Counted from the stretch's first letter, positions 13,636 through 27,000 are shown. The stretch: 64,000 nt of DNA from Lepidodermella squamata (GCA_047495785.1 JBLDXI010000033.1:2852001-2916000), one strand, 5' to 3'. Program-made: numbers and translations. The notes: generated from the sequence alone by a model not told the origin.

Positions 13636-14901
13636 CTAATTGTCATCGTCGTCTTCTCGCTGGGAGAAGAGAAAGTTAGCGGCGAGTTCTTCGTTCTTGT
13701 CACACGCAAAGTACGCTTGAACACACATCGCCTCTGGAAATCCAAGACTCTTCAGTCGATCGATTGCAGCCTTTTCGGCCTAAATATAAAAAAATTCCAC
13801 AACCTCAAAGCATGTCAACTCCTGAATTTTCTACCGGTGTAACTTGTATAACATGACTGGGATTGCGTCCGCCCTGTTGGCCCTGAGGAGCGTTGCCGCC
13901 ACCAAGACCTCCGCCGCCACCAGCATTGAGCATCTCAAGGAACTCTCCCTATTAAATGCATTCACAGTAAATTCTGGAGGCTTGGGTAATAATGAAATGA
14001 AAAACCTGATGTTCCGCAATTTGACTGAGAAGTTGCGGATTACGCTGCTGAATCGCAGCCAGTAACTCTGGCAGTAGAGCGGGGTTCTCCTGAACAGCTG
14101 CTCTGATTTGCTCAAACATGGGATCATCAGCCAAAGCTCCAAGAGCATCAGCGCTCAACCCACCCTCGCCTTCAGACTCTTCTCCCTCGGCATCAGACTG
14201 GCTTACGCCTTGCATAGCCGATTCTCCTGTCGAGGGTTCTCCGGATCGAGCTGGAGTCGGCGGTGGGACAGATGGCATATCGTCAGCAGCGCTAGGCGGG
14301 ATGCCGGACAATAAATACTCAACGGCTCGTTCAGGGTTAAAGAAAGATGCTCGCAGGGCACGCAAAACAGGCTCTCTTTCAAAGCCCATCAACATAATTT
14401 CGTGGACGATTCGCTCGGCCGCTGCATGAAAAACAGCATTTAAATAGACCTAAAAAATTGAAAAATTGCTTTATTACCTTCTCCCATAACCAATTGCTCT
14501 GCAGCAGCTTGTTCCGAAGGACGACTGCTGGATGCGGGCTGAGAAGCAGGAGCAGAGGTGGGAGCAGGAGCAGGTTTCGTGGCAGTTGGTTGAGAAGCAC
14601 TAGATGCCGAGCTTGAGGATTCTGCTGCTGGTTTAGCGGCAGGGGGAGCCTCGGCTGCTGGTTTCTTTGCCGGGCCAAGGATGACAAAGAAGTCATCTTT
14701 TTCACTGTACTTCAATTCATTGAGCTTGGTTTCATCCTTGCAGATGACACCTTTTAGAATCAGACGTTGGCCATCAACTGGAAACTCGTCCCCCTTTTTC
14801 TCTGCGACTTTGGCTTTGATCTGCCCGATAGACGCCTCGTCTTCAACATTTTCAACTTCAAAAAACGTGTTGCGAATAGTTTTAAAGCGCAGGTTCACCA
14901 T
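13636..14901 (-). CDS. RAD23: UV excision repair protein RAD23. Exons 14901-14478, 14421-14006, 13948-13835, 13779-13636
   Basis: UBL domain (LRFKTI...QRLILKG), UBA1 ([27 protein letters not shown]), XPC-binding domain ([19 protein letters not shown]) and UBA2 ([10 protein letters not shown]...[16 protein letters not shown]). Confidence 0.96.
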
Positions 14902-15405
14902 TTCGATCACTTAAAATACACCTGTAAAAAGACTAATGCATATACAATTTATTTCTCTTGTATTTGAAGAAAGCGTGCCAAATTGAAAACCAGCTCAGTT
15001 TTTTAAAGCAACAGCTGGTGCAAGTTTATGATTGCGTAAAGGCCTCTTCTTGTTTTAAAGAATGAAACAATTTGGAACTTTTAATTGGGTTGCGTCCGAC
15101 TTGGGCCTCCACTCTAAGAGATGTCTAGTAAAAGGTACTAGGTACTACAACAAAATTCTACTCCTAATAGTTGATAATCGCAATTAACCATTAATCTATA
15201 AATAGAATTCTTAAATGGGGCTAGGATCGGCGACGAATGGAGCACTAAATCTTACACTCAGAGCTCCAAAAACCCGGCAATATCGTAATTAAATTACGAG
15301 TCGGATCCAAGTCTTTCGGCGCGTTGTCTCGCTAATCTTACGTTTCTCGACTGCTTTGGGTAGCATTGGCTATCTAGATACTAATTTCTTGTTGAAAATG
15401 CATTA

Positions 15406-17377: not shown

Positions 17378-19226
17378 ATGTTTTATACGGACTTGGTCCT
17401 AAGCAAGAAAGGGCCTTTGGCTAGAATATGGCTTGCGGCTCACTGGGACAAGAAGCTGACCAAGTCTCATGTTTATGAAACAAATATATGTGGCTGTGTC
17501 GAAACAATCTTGCAGCCACATTCTGACTTGGCGCTTCGAACGTCGGGCCATCTGCTGTTGGGTGTTTGTCGAATCTTCAGCAAAAAAGCTCATTATCTAT
17601 TGGCCGATTGCAATGATGCTTTCATTAAAATCAAAATGGCTTTTCGATCAGACGCACTCAATTTGGAATTATCTGGCGGTGATATGCTTTTGCCTATAAG
17701 CGAGTTGACATCTGCTATTGATCTACCCTCTGGTCGTCAAAGAAAGCAAATCGGTTCTGCCACCATCGATCCTCTTATTCCAGACTTAAATAGTATTGAT
17801 CTGTCCCTGATGACTGCTTCTACTGGTCAACCACTAGCGCTAAACCTCGACAATAACTTGGATGTCGATAGCTTGCCACATGGTCGTCATGAAAACCAAT
17901 CCGATAAACATCTGCTAAGTGATGCTCGGTGTGGAGCAATGGATCTCGATCGCCCAATTCAAGATGACGGCTTCGGCTTGCTGCTAGGGGACGAAGCCCC
18001 ATCCTCCCTCGACTTTGCGGATTCCGCTGACCTGTTAATGGGTCACAATGTCCAGTCGGATGAAGCATTTGGTGATTCTTATCGTTTGATGGAAGGAACA
18101 GAACCAATTCAACCCTCGAGCGTTGACGAATCGCATCCCAAAGATGTCGTTAATTCAACGCCTGCGACATCGCTTGACCTGGCTGCGTCTGTTACTGTTG
18201 CTGAAAGCATTGCTGGTACCGATGCTTTTGCGGAGGAATCTACCGTTAACGAATTCAGACCAGTTCGCGTGAGAAAGCGGAAAATTGTAGCTATCGCGAT
18301 GGATGACGAAAAGCTACTCAGTTCTGACTTCATCAAGAAATCCCTCGCTGATTCTTCTGACACTGTAACTCGGTTACAATTAGCGCCACCGGTTAGGTCG
18401 CTGATGAACCTGATGCAAAGAGGGCGCGTAGAATATCTTTTATCTTCGCCTTCCATATCTATATCACCTCGAGTTTGCCGCGATATTTTCGCACATTGTG
18501 GGCAAATTTTGGCGAGAAATCTAGAGAAAGAAAATCACACCTCAACTTTCAATGACGTCGAGAATATGGCAGCTATCGATGAAAACATTGCGATAGATGC
18601 TCCTGATGGAACCGTCGCCATGGAAGAACCCATCGCCCCTGTCAGTTTGCTTCATGAATCAGCACATGTAAATAACAAGGCGGATGAAACCGTAGCGAGT
18701 GATCATCCAAAGCGCGCAAAACGAGGAGATGGCGAACAAAGAGCTGTAATGAAAGCTGGCCAGTTTGCTAAGCGCATGGAAGAGTTGCTGAAGCGGCTTG
18801 TCGAAAACGAAGCCTCTGTGTCGAAATCGAGTGGCAAAAATGCTGGAGAGGGAGTGAAACTTGCCGAATTGTTTTTGCCTCAGGATGGCCGGAAAGGCGT
18901 CGCTTGCAAATTCTTTTCTTGCCTAGTATTGCGGAAACTCGGACGTGTAGAAATGGCGCAGGTCAGTTTACTTGATAATTTTTATTAAAACCAATGTGCT
19001 TATTGTCATCTTTTTGTTTCGTTTTTAGGCTGCGCCATTTACTGAAATAAATGTATCTAGCGTAAACAAGCCTTCTCATAATGATCTGAATGATGATGGT
19101 GACGACGATGCTAGTGGAGAGCGCGATGGGAGTGGCGACGAGAGCGATTCAGACGAAAGTAGTAGCTCGGAGTCAGAAGTTGTTGTCAGAAGTCCTTCAC
19201 CTTCGCACCGTCGAAAAGTGCACTGA
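17378..19226 (+). CDS. RAD21: RAD21/SCC1-family cohesin kleisin. Exons 17378-18961, 19029-19226
   Basis: Highly conserved N-terminal domain MFY..VLSKKGPLARIWLAAHWDKKLTK...LALRTSGHLLLGV.RI, central RKRK..MDDEK motif and C-terminal winged helix RKGVACKFFSCLVLRK...QAAPF. Orthologue versus paralogue status is unresolved. Confidence 0.9.
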
Positions 19227-20543
19227 CTAACTTCTGTGTTTTCTACGATGTAATGTTGTCAGCCGCACTTGTTTGCCAAGTCATTAAATGATGGAAATGT
19301 TTCGTCTTGTTTTGTAATTTCGCCTGTTTTGTTTATGATTGTAAAATTATAACTGCATATCTTTTCTGTGCTTAATTTACACGACGATGCCTAATATAAA
19401 TGTACTTTGTGTACTTATCATTTATATGAATGTATATAGAGATGACCTTTATTATTTATTTGATTGCGCCCCATCCGGCTGCGGATGCAAATTTCATCGT
19501 TGTTTTCATCCGAATTTCCTGAATGTTACACCATGTGCGAGCTGCAGAGTAAACTTAGCTTAGGCAGGTTTCCTGGTTTTGAAGATCTCGTGGACTATTT
19601 TGGTAGTGCGGTGGGTGTATAATTAGGAAGCTCTACACTTGAGGTGTTGAGAGGGATGAAAAACAGCTTTTTTTGCGACTTTTTGTACTGCCATCGATGT
19701 TCATTTATTGCTAAAATCTTTATCTTTTTGTTTGCGTCTCGTGTAAGTATACTGATTGACATGTACATTTTTTCATATCATCACAATTCTAGCGAATTTG
19801 TAAAGGCTGTAAGGATTCTGAAGAAAACAGGAAATGATGGCGATGACGGTTTTCTGTCTGTCTTATTCACTCACTGTTCTGATTGATAATCGACTGTAGA
19901 TTTGGTCGTTGCTTCGATTGAGCAAGAAATTTTTATGTATGCTCCTGCGACATTCAACGGAAAGCGCTCAAGTGCCATTGAATGTTGTTCATTCTCTGTT
20001 AACGAAATATTAGGAGGATGATGATGATATAAATCACTGACCGTTTTTATTAAAATGAATTTGAGCGATAAATCAGTGTTTTTGTATTCTTTCATAATAT
20101 TTAGTGTTTCGACTAGTAGAAGTTGCCATTTATTGAGTTATCAATGTCCCGACCGAATAGCAGGTGACATTACTCGGGTAGCATTGGCTTGACAATTAAG
20201 TTATTAATAATTTCATAAAAATATTTCAAAGCTGGAATCACAGTATGCTTGGATAATGGGATTCGAATGGCTGTTACGTTTCATAAGCCTTATCAGAATG
20301 TCATGAGTATTCGAGCCCGATGAATGCAAAATTCGAAAAGTCGTATTTTCCTTTGAAGTACCCGGCGCAGGGTTCGTAGTTCTCGTCAACTATGACTTAG
20401 TCTCGAACCGAATAGTGGGGACGAGATTCTACTCACTTTCGTGTTACTCTACGATTAAGCCATCCAACCTTGCATGATTTGATTCGGCATTTTTTCAAAT
20501 AACTTACTTTTTCGTAGGCTTTATTTCATCTGCGATCGAAGTA

Positions 20544-23500
20544 ATGTATTATGTCTTCAAAAGCTTTAATCATACGGGGCGATCTATTTGCAGTCGATTT
20601 TGTACCTTGCGATTATTCCCAACCAGATTGTGCTCTGCTGCAGTAAAACCTACCGTCTCCTTGCCAGTACCTTTGCCGAAAAATCACAAAAAAATAGGTT
20701 TGCGCCCTCCATTAATTGCTGATTTGAGCTTCATCAGTGATACTTTGATAGGATACTGGTTACTGGCTAGTGCTGGTCTCACATCTGGAGTTCTATTTCT
20801 TGGCGGTCTGACGCGACGTCATGAGGCTAAAATCTCGGTGGCACAATGGAAGTTTGTGCAAAAAATGAAGTTTCCTAAAACGGAAGAGGTTGTCTTTCTT
20901 TGTTCCTTGCTTTCCGTTGTTTCTCTGTGGTTGTCGTAGAGCAGATGTCCTAACTCTTCCTTCTCTTAATTTTCCTTTCTATTATTTCTCTTCTTCCATT
21001 CTTCTTCCTTAAAACTTTTGGAACCCTGGGCGACCAGATGGTCAAAGGCTTGCGGGCTCCAGGGATCTCCAGAGAGCTGGAATCCCAGGGAACTCTTTAA
21101 CACCCTGAGTTCGAAAAAAATTCTCCGGAACCCGTGAAACTGGGCTCCGGTTTTCGGGCCTTGAATCAGCCAATCATGTGAACCACAACTGCTTATTAGA
21201 CTACGACATGCTTACTGGTAGAATGCCTCATTCATGGGCTCAGTTCCACATCTCTGTACGCAGAATCATGAATGTTCATTGTTCATCGCGACTATTTTCA
21301 TATTTTTTAGGAGTGGCTTCAGCAGTTTCACCAGTTCGAAGCATTGGGAGGAGTTTCAGGCTCGACTTTGGAAGACTTTAGAACAATTGTTTCGCACGAA
21401 GCAGCTTTCTATTATTACGGCCGGGTAGTTGCAACAAGTTTTCTGTTGCCAGGTTAGATTGTGAAACAAAAACACACATACCGTCAACTGGGGTGACTTT
21501 ACCCAGTGGGGTGACATATTGGCATGGGTTTTTGTAACTGACTTTCAAATAACCGCGGTGGGCATGTGTTACATTGAAATATAGTCGATATGGATGCCAA
21601 TCGAAAGCTGACAGGACCTGCAGCCAAACGGAGTTGGCATTTTGACCAAATTGATACGCTCACGAAGCGTATTATCAATTACCTGTCACCAAAGTCACCC
21701 CAAACGGCAGTTTCACATATGGGGTGACTTCGTCGTATGTTCTCTCTTCGTTAATCAATATTTTTCATGCGACAATGACTGGGGAAATAAATTATGAGAG
21801 CTAAGAGGCTGGAATTTGGTGATCAGACAGGATCGGTAAAGGGATCGGAGGCTGTCTACCAATATACATGTAATTTAATCCACACACAGTAGGATCACAT
21901 TCAGCTAGGAAATTAGGGCCAAACGGGTCTAATAAACGTTCAAAATTATTAGCAGATAAAATTCCGTGAAGGTTGATTGAATAAATTCATGTTATTTGCA
22001 AGTTTTTACATGTCACGTGATGCTAATAAAGTCACCCCAGTTGACGGTACTTGATTATTCGTTTTTCCAGGCCTCTACTTTTGGGCCAGGGGACACTTCA
22101 CGAAACATCTGAAAATTCGATTCGCGGTTCTATGCGGATTTCTTGGAAGTCACGCAATTTTAGGCGTTGCATTTGCTCGGCACGACAAGTTTCGAAATGT
22201 TGATGAAAGGCTGGAGGCTAGGACATCTCCATACCGCTTAGCCGCTCACTTGACTCCATCACTGTTCTTCTACGTCATCTCGCTATGGAACGGACTCAGT
22301 CTAATTCTTCCGCAGGTTTATATTCCTGAATCGACTCGCTACGTTATTATCAGGAGAATGTTGGTTTCAATTGTCTTTCTATGTAAAATAGCATTCTTAT
22401 TCTGAATATCTCAAGGTTTGCTCATCCATTAATGCTATTGATTTTCTCCACGACTATCACTGGCATCGTCGCTAGCAGCATTCAAGCAGGCTTGGTATAT
22501 AACTCGTGGCCACTCTTTGCTGATCGATGGGTTCCGAGTGATTTATGGGATGAGTCACTCGTGCCATCATATCGTAACTTTTTTGAGAATCAAACCATGG
22601 TTCAATTCGTCCATCGATTGGCTGGCGAATTATGCTTCATTGCTGTAGCAGGTTTTTATTTGGCAGCTAGAAGAATTCCGCATCTTCCTCCCAGAGCGAA
22701 GCTTGCCTTGAATTCACTGCTCGCGATGGTTTCCATCCAGGTACATCAAACTTATGTTATGAAACCTTATGAAACCAATTGGGTTGCCCTCGCTTGCGTA
22801 TCAAAATCGCTCAAATGTGGTATCACTTGCGTATTTTTCAAGTAAAATGACACCAAGCATCATTTTCGTAGCCCATAATTAAAAACTTTATATCATTCAT
22901 TTCATTTGGAACAATGGGCGCTATTGTTATGTACAAGAGAGCCTAATATGAACGGTTCAGGTGTCAAAATTGTTTTCAAAGTTAACTATAAATATATCAC
23001 TCCTTCATACGATTGCTTTTTAACACGCATTTTCTCGAAAACCGTAAGCTTCTCGCGATCGTCTCAGAGCAATATGAACTCTCTGGCATAATCATCTGAT
23101 GAATTCCCGTCAACTGCTCTTGGATCTAATACAGTTGGCTACGAATGCTCAAGGTTCAACAAGGCAAGGAAGCTGCTCTGCTTCCAGGGGTCCGTTTTCA
23201 TCTGCGAACACTGTGAAAATGAAAGAATCCCTACTACCTAATAGTATACACCTAACTGAAATATGAACATATTATTATACCGTTCTTATATATGACGAAT
23301 GCGCCATCATGCTATGAGTCATATTATTCTTGGACTTGAATTGCAATATGTGAACGAATAACAGAAATGAAAAAACACCCAAATTTCTCTCTTGGAAAGT
23401 GTTCGTTCCGGGCGTGAGCGCGGCTCTGGCGGTCCGTAGAGGCTCTCGTTGTCAGCCGGTTGGCTAGCACGAGCCTTATGTTGTCGGGCTTCCTTAGCTA

Positions 23501-24025
23501 TGCGCTCAGTTGTCCCCGGGGCTCTCACTTTCTCACTGAGAAAAGGCATACTGTTTCCTGTTTCACGTCCTTGATGTTACTTAATTTACGTTTTATAATC
23601 AGGATTATTTCATAATGATGAACTTTAAAAAACAAACTATTACTATATTGACTGCTGCTATATACCTACAAAGAAATCGAAACATCTTTACTAACCTAAA
23701 TACAATTAGCGGTTATAAAATACTACGATTTTAAATAATCGCGGGGTTGAACCCAAATAAAACATGATATAAAAAATAAAAATAAAAAATTTGAGCGATT
23801 TTGATACGCAAGTGATAAAATGCGCAACCTGCAATGTTTTCCTTCAATTTGATGTAATGCTGAGATTTTTTTACATTCGCATAGGCTGGATTAGGAGTGG
23901 CAGCTTTATTGACATACGTGCCTATCCACGTTGCTGCAACTCATCAGACCGGATCTGTTGCTGTGCTGTCTTGTGCGGTGTGGTTTGCCAATGAAATCCG
24001 AAAATGGAAGATACCAATCAAATGA
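20544..24025 (+). CDS. COX15: COX15 heme A synthase-family protein with divergent N-terminal half. Exons 20544-20697, 20752-20888, 21311-21452, 22071-22359, 22416-22740, 23885-24025
   Basis: Mitochondrial-type basic presequence, then GYWLL..LGGLTR, YRLAAHL, AGLVYNSWP, FFENQTMVQFVHR and VAATHQTGS, all colinear with human COX15. Six exons join in phase with GT-AG introns. Confidence 0.88.
21481..22047. mobile_element. MITE, Tc1/mariner-pogo superfamily, in COX15 intron 3
   Basis: Perfect 21-bp TIRs CCGTCAACTGGGGTGACTTTA, TA target-site duplication on both sides, internal copies of GGGGTGAC in both orientations. Confidence 0.92.
22780..23831. mobile_element. Inverted-repeat-bounded non-autonomous DNA element in COX15 intron 5, carrying a spliced antisense ORF
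   Basis: Perfect 24-bp subterminal inverted repeats (22793-22816 / 23789-23812), termini TGGGTTGC / GCAACCTG, CAAT on both flanks. Confidence 0.7.
23139..23549 (-). CDS. Hypothetical ~98-aa protein or pseudogene nested antisense in COX15 intron 5. Exons 23549-23379, 23334-23281, 23210-23139
   Basis: ATG-initiated ORF with two phase-0 GT-AG introns (44 and 70 nt). The frame continues past a TAG and a TGA with coding-like composition. No recognisable homology. Confidence 0.4.
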
Positions 24026-27000
24026 TGATGAAGCATATCTTTATTGTTGTAACTGAGATGAGCCTCTTTATTGTGTTCTTGTATTTACATTGCGTTTCTG
24101 TGAAATGTCCAGTGATTTCTTTTCGGGTACATTATGCGGATCTTCATTCTAGAATGTTCAGATATTTGTGAATAATGTTAATAAAAAAGCGTGAACAAAT
24201 AACTTCGTAAAGCGGTTTATTGTTTGACACATCATAAATTTGGAAAAAAGAGCTGCGGTCTTTGCATTGCCTTGGAGAGCTTTGAGAGAACAAAGAATGC
24301 TTATTTTATATAATGTATAAGGTATAAAAATCAAACGCCATCTGAAATTCCATACATCAAGAAAACGAATCGAATAATATCATTTTTTGTCTGCGTCATT
24401 AAGGAAAATATAGCAGATGATGTAGAATGTACCATTCTTTCTTCTTCTTCTTTTGTTATGATTAAGAATAAATTGGTTGGTAAACGGTGCGCTGTTTGTT
24501 ATCGTTTTGCAATCGTTAAGAATGGCGCACGGCCAGGCTGTTAAAATAAACGAGCGTGTACTATATAAATCTTTATAGACAAAGAATCGATCACGCATTG
24601 TTGTGAGCAGGTAAAAAGTCTTCGTCTCATTCATTATTGCAATCGCAAGATCGCAATTTGTAGATGCAAAATAATGAATGAAGGTGTCAGAGCGCAATAT
24701 TTTTACTTCATATTCGCATTGCCGTCCCTTCGATCACGCATTTTCATCAAAGTCCTTGTTCCCAGGAAAGCTTTCCCATGAAATATTTAATGCAACAAAG
24801 GCGCGCTTTGTTGTTTAATTTAACCTGCAGCTTTGTAAACAAACACAAGCATTTTTCACAATGATACGATTCTATATACTCCTCATTCTTTCTCCTTGCT
24901 TGCAAAAATGGCGCGGCTAGAATACATATTCGGATCCACTTCGTAGATAATGCAAAATATAAAATATTATTTAAAAAATACCGAGATCAAATTGATCTTC
25001 CTGTTTTTGCGAACTGTTTTCCCAACCATCATGCGCGTCAAACGTCTGTGTAGTTGAAAAACGTAGGATAATCGTATTATACTAGTTATTAGCTATGGAA
25101 CTCCTGTCAGCACCCCGGTCGACGACTCACCAGTTGCTGAACCGCCTTTTACATCAGTATTCACGATAATTCCTATGTGAAGTAATTATCGCCATCAAAT
25201 AATCTTTGGCAAAGATGAGACAATATTATAGAACAGCGGTGGAGCTTTATCCAGCGCGAGTAAATTACTTGTACATGTATTTGGACAGGGAAGGAATATA
25301 TGGATCCAGAGGATGCAAGGCGCGCAGTGCGCATCATCCTATAATTCCATTTTATAACCGCAGCGCGTGCGTCTGTTGTTTGCGCCTGTTTGCTATAAGT
25401 GCGACACTCGACCAAATCCTTGGCCCTCTTGTGGCAGGCGCGTGCTGGCGTTTGCGAGTGGCAGAGTTAACAACAGTGGTGGTGGTGGCAAATTATTGAC
25501 AACACGGCTGCAAGGCTCATATTATTTTCTTAACATAAAATGAAGATATTATACCTAGGGAGTAGCACACGGCTGAACAAATAAATGACTATAAATATAT
25601 TTCATTTGTTGTTCTTTCTACTTTCTCACTTTCCAGCTTCTGAATAATAGCCCGTTGTTGCATTCTTTAAGGCAGATTTTTCCTTGACCGCTTATAAATT
25701 ATTTTTTAACACTAACCCATAACAGCAACGCAGAAAATTGATTTCATGTCCCCTGGCTAATATCTTCCTCTTCCGTCTCTTTTCTTCCCTCTCTATTCTT
25801 CCTATTCTAAGGTGGTTTAGGCCTGCTATATACAAATTGATATTGCAGTTATCCGCGGAAACATAAATATTCAATTTGTTCTCAACGTGAAATGTATTAT
25901 CGCATATCGATTGGATGTGATAAATCATAATTTGTTTAAATTTGTGCTCATGAAGTTGCTGTCCTGCGGCTGCTATCAGGGATATTCCAATTTATCAAGT
26001 GACACGAATAAATGCGAGACAGTGCACCGTAGAACATCTGTCCGATCATCCTTTGCGATATGCTCGTCATCATCGCGCCATGCCATATCAAAACTTTGTC
26101 GAATTATTCCGCCTCGGCGCTGACAGCACTGGACCCCGACCAACTATATCATCGCCTAAAAATAAGTTCGCCATCCTTTGCTCTCATCCACAAACCTTTT
26201 GGAGGTGGACAATATTCCTTCTTCGTTTTCTGAGGTATTCCTTCTTCTTTCTTCCATCAATTTCCATTACACTTTCCATGGGCATATGAGCATCGGCCCG
26301 TTTTACATTCGTATACGACTTATTTACTGCAGAGATCTAACTGCAGATAAAGAAAAGTGAACCCGATCATTTTACATTTTCGTAAACATGGCAAGGATAT
26401 ATTTATCATCGTCGCGTATTTTAAAATTATAAATTTGGTATCGCCGTGCTCATAGAGTATCATTCTAAGAATCCGGTTTAAATTCTCCTTTGAAAAGCAC
26501 CATTTAGAACGGCGCATCTTTTCTAATTTCTTGCTTAGCCTTGGAGGGAAAGCTTGCAACTCCAGCAATATGAGGTCAAAATCGGTATGATGCAAGTATT
26601 TAGGAAATGTAGCGATGTGCGCATTAAGGCGCATACAGTTTCTGCGCGCCTCCCTAATTTGACAGCCATCTGCGCGCACTTATAGGCGTAAGGGCGCGCG
26701 TCCTCAACATCATTCTCGCACAACGCGTGCTACTACTGGCCTCATTGACGACGACTGCAGCTATCTGTCTACTGGTGCATCATTCGCGCATCCCGGATCA
26801 GGCGCAACATCGCCGCGCCTGGTGTTATAATTCTCCACTACTATGTATGTACGATTGCTCGCAGGAGGCCAATCGTGCCTCGGAGGCAAAGACAGACGCT
26901 ATACCCGTAATGTACAAAGTATTATTGCTCCCTTAATACGGCCAAGGAATGTCATTATTATTACCATTGCGATCAAATCCTTTCGGCTAATATTATATGC

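Follow-up and report, generated by a model that had tools for sequence, protein, structure and literature searches.

Cytochrome c oxidase cannot do without heme A synthase, and aerobic animals require heme a. To our knowledge, the mechanism of the synthase is still unresolved, as there is no in vitro assay for it. The stretch of Lepidodermella squamata DNA analyzed here (64 kb, referred to throughout as the window) contains a homologue of this enzyme, COX15, in which the first of the four family histidines is a phenylalanine and several of the surrounding motifs are replaced. The question that it raises is what such a protein can do: whether it still makes heme a, has turned to other chemistry, binds heme as a non-catalytic relative of a conventional enzyme, or is simply in decay.

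Proteins of the COX15/CtaA family carry mirrored motifs, with E-x-x-H-R on helix 2 and x-x-x-H-x on helix 6, and have further histidines on helices 4 and 8 (motif definition in PMC12808453). The helix-2 motif is written E57-X1-X2-H1-R, with a strictly conserved Glu (PMC12808453), and the survey summarized in that paper gives H1 as His across all types, or as Asn in some lineages. We refer to the histidines of helices 4, 6, and 8 as H2, H3, and H4. In yeast Cox15 all four histidines are essential, with H169 and H245 proposed to ligate heme o, the substrate, and H368 and H431 to ligate heme b, the cofactor (PMC13213658).

Gene structure and transcripts

The homologue is encoded by five exons and 413 codons on the forward strand (20544-24025), with a frame that is unbroken over all 413 codons and with GT..AG ends at all four introns. 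The preliminary description had placed the gene at 20752-22359, and the gene is indeed there, but that span takes in only part of exon 1 through exon 3; its statement that the frame and splice sites are intact applies to the full model, three of whose junctions are also seen in sequencing run X1, described below. The GC content of the window is 41-45%. The features are as follows.

20544-20888, forward strand: exon 1, presequence-like N terminus and helix 1; ends in phase 0 with GAG, followed by the intron GT
20811-20837, forward strand: helix-1 motif TRRHEAKIS, replacing canonical TRLTESGLS
21311-21452, forward strand: exon 2, loop joining helix 1 to helix 2, and first part of helix 2
21395-21412, forward strand: helix-2 motif H-E-A-A-F-Y, replacing (M/x)-E-x-x-H-R
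21464-22064, no strand: intron 2 MITE-like insertion, whose terminal inverted repeats are 21464-21501 and 22027-22064
22071-22359, forward strand: exon 3, end of helix 2 and helices 3 and 4; Pfam score 33.9 bits
22148-22189, forward strand: helix-3 motif SHAILGVAFARHDK, replacing canonical FQGLLGWYMVKSGL
22416-22740, forward strand: exon 4, helices 5 and 6 and part of helix 7; Pfam score 62.9 bits
23885-24025, forward strand: exon 5, end of helix 7 and helix 8; stop codon TGA at 24023-24025

The Pfam COX15-CtaA profile (PF02628) matches exons 1, 3, 4, and 5 at colinear profile positions and places the protein in the COX15/CtaA family. Taken singly, exon 3 and exon 4 both score over the 29.9-bit cut-off, and the matches of exon 1 (residues 71-115) and exon 5 are below threshold at the correct profile positions. 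The two four-helix halves with their mirrored motifs are both recognizable, the exon pieces being colinear on 13 canonical proteins, and a simple hydropathy scan shows hydrophobic segments for helices 1, 3, 4, 5, 6, 7, and 8 (helix 2 is divided between exons 2 and 3 and has no score as a single segment). There are 10 Lys or Arg and no acidic residues among the first 59 amino acids, and the N terminus appears to resemble a mitochondrial presequence.

Two sequencing runs bear on this model, a public run from 2015 whose kind was guessed as RNA (X1) and a second run, from 2024, that contains the DNA (X2). Three of the four splice junctions (2-3, 3-4, and 4-5) are present in X1 contigs. For the exon 2-3 junction, two contigs have a loose end, CCTCTACTTT, at 21453; the exon 3-4 junction is seen from either side, with loose ends at 22362 and 22416; and the exon 4-5 junction appears as a skip from 22738 to 23883 with GT..AG ends. 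These spliced contigs establish transcription of the locus and the correctness of the model for exons 2 to 5. The X1 contigs run on to 24199, and the additional sequence is consistent with a 3' UTR. Run X1 has no contig over exon 1 or intron 1, and we infer the presence of exon 1 in the mRNA from its frame, its donor site, and its homology; by tblastn it is the sole helix-1-like exon of the window. The X2 contigs contain exons 1 and 2 with zero differences. The MITE-like insertion of intron 2 has high repeat depth and is missing from one X2 contig (joint from 21466 to 22068).

Ligand residues and extent of divergence

The exon pieces were aligned one at a time, as fragments, with 13 canonical COX15 proteins. 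Those named here are human COX15 isoform 3 (P0028, NP_001307904.1), the polar bear protein (P0035), and that of the midge Contarinia nasturtii (P0036, XP_031637521.1); the other ten range from protists to vertebrates. The human protein reads TRLTESGLS, YMEYSHRMWGR, FQGLLGWYMVKSGL, and YRLAAH, so that the human motifs quoted in the preliminary description are correct, and its E149, H152, H226, and G78 are at the positions published in PMC13213658. The motifs compare as follows.

Helix 1: canonical GGVTRLTESGLSM; here GGLTRRHEAKISV; replaced
Helix 2: canonical (Y)MEYSHRMWGR; here (S)HEAAFYYYGR; Glu retained, Phe for His, Tyr for Arg
Helix 3: canonical QGLLGWYMVKSGL; here HAILGVAFARHDK; replaced
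Helix 4: canonical YRLAAH; here YRLAAH; kept, H2 is CAC at 22247-22249 (forward strand)
Helix 5: canonical LSGAFVAG; here ITGIVASS; replaced
Helix 6: canonical VQFDHR; here VQFVHR; H3 kept, CAT at 22612-22614 (forward strand)
Helix 8: canonical AATHQ; here AATHQ; H4 kept, CAT at 23942-23944 (forward strand)

The position three residues after the helix-2 Glu, where H1 is His or Asn (B. subtilis H60, yeast H169, human H152), is occupied by Phe (TTC, 21407-21409), and the Arg that follows it in the canonical motif is Tyr. The loss of the His and Arg of E-x-x-H-R was thus described accurately at the outset; the Glu of that motif is, however, kept (GAA, 21398-21400), and aligns with the Glu of all comparators (B. 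subtilis E57, yeast E166, human E149). The other three histidines, corresponding to H123, H216, and H278 of B. subtilis, are all present, and the codons listed above bear out the earlier statement that YRLAAH and both C-domain histidines (QFVHR, ATHQ) are kept. The substrate-side region has also gained residues. A new His (CAC, 21395-21397) lies four residues ahead of the lost H1, three Tyr come after the Phe at the H1 position, and helix 3 acquires a new His as well. Asn is able to coordinate heme, and Phe is unable to do so.

Replacement of the helix-1 motif TRLTESGLS by TRRHEAKIS and of the helix-3 motif FQGLLGWYMVKSGL by SHAILGVAFARHDK, both claimed previously, is upheld by the fragment alignments, in which these two motifs and SHEAAFYYYGR align to their canonical counterparts without gaps. 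The canonical helix-3 motif has Q, G, G, M, V, S, G, and L invariant in a nine-protein alignment (A1), and the T.SGL core of helix 1 is common even to a bacterial 'heme O oxygenase' structure, 8aw5, that the canonical profile matches weakly.

More than half of all residues are replaced in the homologue. With columns of the separately aligned exon pieces read side by side, the N half is 29-34% and the C half 30-46% identical to the canonical proteins; by exon, identity to mammal and insect COX15 is 29-56%, compared with 54% between insect and mammal COX15. Of the near-invariant columns, defined as those at least 90% conserved among the 13 comparators, the homologue keeps 29 of the 55 that lie in the N half and 17 of the 27 that lie in the C half. 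The N half is the better conserved among canonical proteins (ratio of N-half to C-half identity 0.92-1.33, mean 1.14); the corresponding ratio for the homologue is 0.62-1.15, and is 0.62 against the sole animal comparator having both halves. By these alignments, divergence is protein-wide, with an extra loss in the usually best-conserved substrate half. The preliminary description of a remodelled catalytic half is therefore right in part: the most conserved of the lost family motifs are there, but the C half has diverged too, as its column count and the change of LSGAFVAG to ITGIVASS show.

A second variant of the locus, a few percent different and either an allele or a near-identical copy, is present in both runs. 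Ten exonic differences are among those listed (40 more lie across the stretch, outside the list), of which two are non-synonymous (a change of F to L at 22192 and one of V to M at 23897). As the other eight listed are synonymous, we conclude that the homologue is under purifying selection, from a small sample of 10 listed variants. Nine of these 10 are at third codon positions (binomial P of about 4e-4 for at least 9 of 10). Four of the listed differences are in the N half, three of them synonymous, which is too few for a claim about selection on individual domains.

Searches for a canonical exon, a second copy, and relatives

The preliminary description had itself named circumstances that would undo it, namely an alternative exon or RNA editing that restores E-x-x-H-R, or a locus that is unexpressed and evolving neutrally, and the data go against each of them. 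A tblastn search of the 64-kb window with the 13 canonical proteins, at E values up to 50, matches the five known exons alone, with no alternative or mutually exclusive canonical exon; a cryptic exon restoring E-x-x-H-R is thus rejected for the introns and for the rest of the 64 kb. Editing is rejected too, as conversion of TTC to CAY needs both a T-to-C and a T-to-A change, beyond the reach of A-to-I or C-to-U editing, and no exon 2 difference is among those listed for the RNA-like run X1. Spliced X1 contigs and the listed excess of synonymous differences speak against an unexpressed, neutrally evolving locus.

There is no second COX15 copy in the 64-kb window. The L. squamata assembly is 122 Mb in 157 contigs, with 43% GC and 2.8% duplicated BUSCOs (PMC11660948); this low duplication argues against a whole-genome duplication, so a second COX15, if there is any, would be a local duplicate. 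Two fragment matches (P0004 and P0012) were considered as the animal's own canonical COX15 and rejected, since they come from unrelated samples.

An exhaustive phmmer search with exon 3 against 1.84 billion representatives, at E values up to 1e-3, returned 27 matches, the best at 41% identity, and all of those retrieved are canonical COX15. The closest relatives of the homologue are animal COX15 proteins. None of the phmmer matches retrieved has the remodelled motifs, and by these comparisons the remodelled form is unique among the sequences searched, in collections without the animal's own proteins. A word-index protein search with a 137-amino-acid ORF around exon 4 found no match, itself included, which indicates that the proteins of this animal are absent from that collection. 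A sequence search of the PDB with exon 3 alone recovered no heme A synthase, and the canonical profile gave the weak match (E = 0.13) to 8aw5, which confirms homology of the helix-1 and helix-2 motifs, with residue numbering beyond its reach.

Candidate roles of the homologue

The preliminary description proposed a pseudo-enzyme subunit of a COX15 hetero-oligomer, a heme chaperone or electron carrier, or an enzyme with migrated ligands, and the sequence data do not discriminate among these. The reading that we favor, giving it about an even chance, is that the gene encodes a catalytically inactive, heme-binding COX15 paralogue of the mitochondrial inner membrane, acting beside a canonical COX15 that would be encoded elsewhere in the genome. 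Besides H1 and the adjacent Arg, the protein has lost the helix-1 and helix-3 motifs, which by chain order would lie at the outer helix ends around the substrate site. In B. subtilis CtaA, the change of H1 to Leu (H60L) abolishes all activity with hemes b and o still bound, according to PMC12808453. Since replacement of H1 inactivates the B. subtilis enzyme without loss of these hemes, and activity is also lost in yeast, heme b probably remains bound in the C bundle of the homologue, and the oxidation of heme o would be lost. The literature leans toward loss of catalysis with retention of heme binding (PMC12808453).

Cox15 oligomers form regardless of monomer activity (PMC13213658), so a non-catalytic protein of this kind may join oligomers of canonical COX15, and perhaps regulate them. 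In the trimer, the C bundles make up a rigid core and the N bundles a flexible periphery (PMC7327177). The homologue would retain this oligomer-forming C bundle together with its heme b site. Alternatively, the protein may hold heme o or heme a for hand-over. Either role, as partner or as holder, requires the predicted canonical COX15 elsewhere in the genome. We note that the retained Glu and H2 are unexpected if the substrate site had simply been abandoned, and count against this reading. With a new His four residues before the lost H1 and on nearly the same helix face, and with three Tyr nearby in the chain, a replacement ligand is conceivable. If the protein is indeed non-catalytic, it may be the first candidate for a non-catalytic COX15 relative in a eukaryote, and would offer a handle on suspected non-enzymatic roles of Cox15 oligomers, such as heme hand-over and coupling to oxidase assembly.

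It is also conceivable, but in our judgment unlikely, that this is the sole COX15 of the animal, a working heme A synthase without H1 that would bind the substrate heme through H2 and a relocated ligand, which would be the new His on helix 2, the new His on helix 3, or a Tyr of the three that follow the Phe. Heme a is a necessity for an aerobic animal, and the window contains no other COX15; the Glu, H2, and the Gly equivalent to G78 are kept, and the gene is both expressed and under purifying selection. By helix geometry, the His at -1 from the Glu would be separated from the lost His by about 40 degrees of rotation and 6 A of rise, and the natural Asn at H1 in Actinomycetota (Mogi 2009, as cited in PMC12808453) suggests that this position is not absolutely fixed. 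Weighing against a sole enzyme, 26 of the 55 near-invariant N-half columns are changed, the Arg of E-x-x-H-R among them, and the helix-1 and helix-3 motifs that are altered here show little or no variation from protists to mammals, so that their loss would be unexpected in an essential single-copy enzyme. H1 is, moreover, solely His or Asn in the survey and inactive as Leu in B. subtilis (both in PMC12808453), and yeast needs all four of its histidines (PMC13213658). Were the gene nonetheless the sole copy, the substrate site of heme A synthase would be far more plastic than mutagenesis suggests, and the locus would be a natural experiment on which parts of that site are dispensable. Less likely still is a catalytic paralogue with an altered reaction or substrate, which might stop at the hydroxylated intermediate or take another heme or porphyrin into a rebuilt, more polar pocket. 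In favor of such a protein, the Glu, H2, and the entire cofactor side are kept, the gene is under purifying selection, and the pocket-lining motifs have been swapped for new polar residues (RRHEAK, SH, RHDK) and not randomized; however, the new motifs occur in no relative among the phmmer matches, so their conservation cannot be shown, 10 listed variants are too few to detect selection on the new residues, and the literature searched offered no precedent.

The remaining explanations do not invoke a functional change at all. A duplicate in early decay, a pseudogene that has yet to gain a stop or frameshift, would account for the loss of an essential ligand and of many near-invariant residues in both halves, and exon 1 is without RNA support. 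It is nevertheless largely refuted, and we regard it as very improbable: the 413 codons and four good introns are free of defects after replacement of more than half of the residues, which points against decay, and the transcripts are spliced. The listed synonymous and non-synonymous differences stand at 8:2, when neutrality would give approximately the reverse, and the protein still has the Glu, the type-2 helix-6 motif Q-F-x-H-R, and three of the four His. An artefact, whether from assembly error, contamination, or a wrong exon model, is refuted, with a negligible chance of being correct. Although the assembly was made from amplified DNA of a single tiny animal (PMC11660948), the sequence is present in two independent runs from different studies and years, with X2 matching exons 1 and 2 exactly; the junctions are confirmed by spliced contigs, and both the neighboring genes and the closest relatives are animal.

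Comparison with known proteins places the favored reading, an inactive heme-binding paralogue, in context. The homologue shares with eukaryotic COX15 (type 2, or class D; human P0028 and C. nasturtii P0036) the PF02628 domain, the arrangement of helices and motifs along the chain, and an N terminus like a presequence, as well as the Glu (human E149), H2 (H226), H3, H4, the Gly equivalent to G78, the type-2 helix-6 motif Q-F-x-H-R, and the absence of loop cysteine pairs. It differs in having Phe at H1 (human H152) and Tyr in place of the adjoining Arg, and in the replacement of TRLTESGLS, QGLLGWYMVKSGL, and LSGAFVAG. As in B. subtilis CtaA H60L, H1 is occupied by a hydrophobic residue that does not ligate heme, and the Glu and the three remaining His are present; H60L is a laboratory point mutant, whereas the change here is natural, is accompanied by many other changes in the pocket, and is maintained by selection. 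The Asn-H1 enzymes of Actinomycetota, as PMC12808453 presents them, likewise have a natural non-His residue at H1 in a presumably functional protein, but theirs is one that can ligate heme, as Phe cannot, and the rest of their motif is kept. A natural change of His to Phe at one of the four ligand positions is also found among the archaeal type 1A^ heme A synthase-like proteins, in which PMC12808453 reports Phe at H3 in 55% of sequences; there it affects the cofactor side of prokaryotic proteins, and here the substrate-side H1 of an animal mitochondrial protein.

The COX15 locus and its two variants

The same two variants of the COX15-homologue locus (20400-24200) are present in both public runs, which come from separate studies, years, and organism labels, and locally the variants differ by ∼3 to 6%. 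Such a pair would fit a single clonal culture lineage that carries two diverged haplotypes. A search for a canonical copy in Lepidodermella squamata led to a COX15 gene on a metagenome contig (L001, with its own coordinates), which has no evident tie to this genome.

L001 5676-6890: canonical COX15 with four short-intron exons, on a 769-kb eukaryotic contig of an ENA metagenome assembly

Noncoding features of the COX15 homologue

20510-20543: polypyrimidine tract with an AG (tttcgtAG, AG at 20516-20517), 26 nt before the ATG
21464-22064: MITE-like element of ∼600 bp, in intron 2

The tract and its AG, which lie outside RNA contig coverage, would suit a spliced-leader acceptor. The intron 2 element has terminal inverted repeats of 38 nt that are 84% complementary, with a core, GTCACCCCAGTTGACGGTA, that is exact in both arms. 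It is multicopy, as depth across it reaches up to 20 times that of the flanks, and its presence is polymorphic, since one contig from the 2024 DNA run (X2) lacks it, jumping from 21466 to 22068 with 33 different letters instead.

Neighboring genes

17378-18988, + strand: kleisin gene, a 536-aa open reading frame with Rad21/Rec8 domain matches
13952-14907, − strand: pieces of a RAD23-like gene, with Pfam ubiquitin, UBA, and XPC-binding domains

The N-terminal Rad21/Rec8 domain is strong in the kleisin (124 bits) and the C-terminal match is weak; the reading frame is unbroken and the gene is apparently intronless. It shares its strand with the COX15 homologue, which lies 1.5 kb farther downstream.
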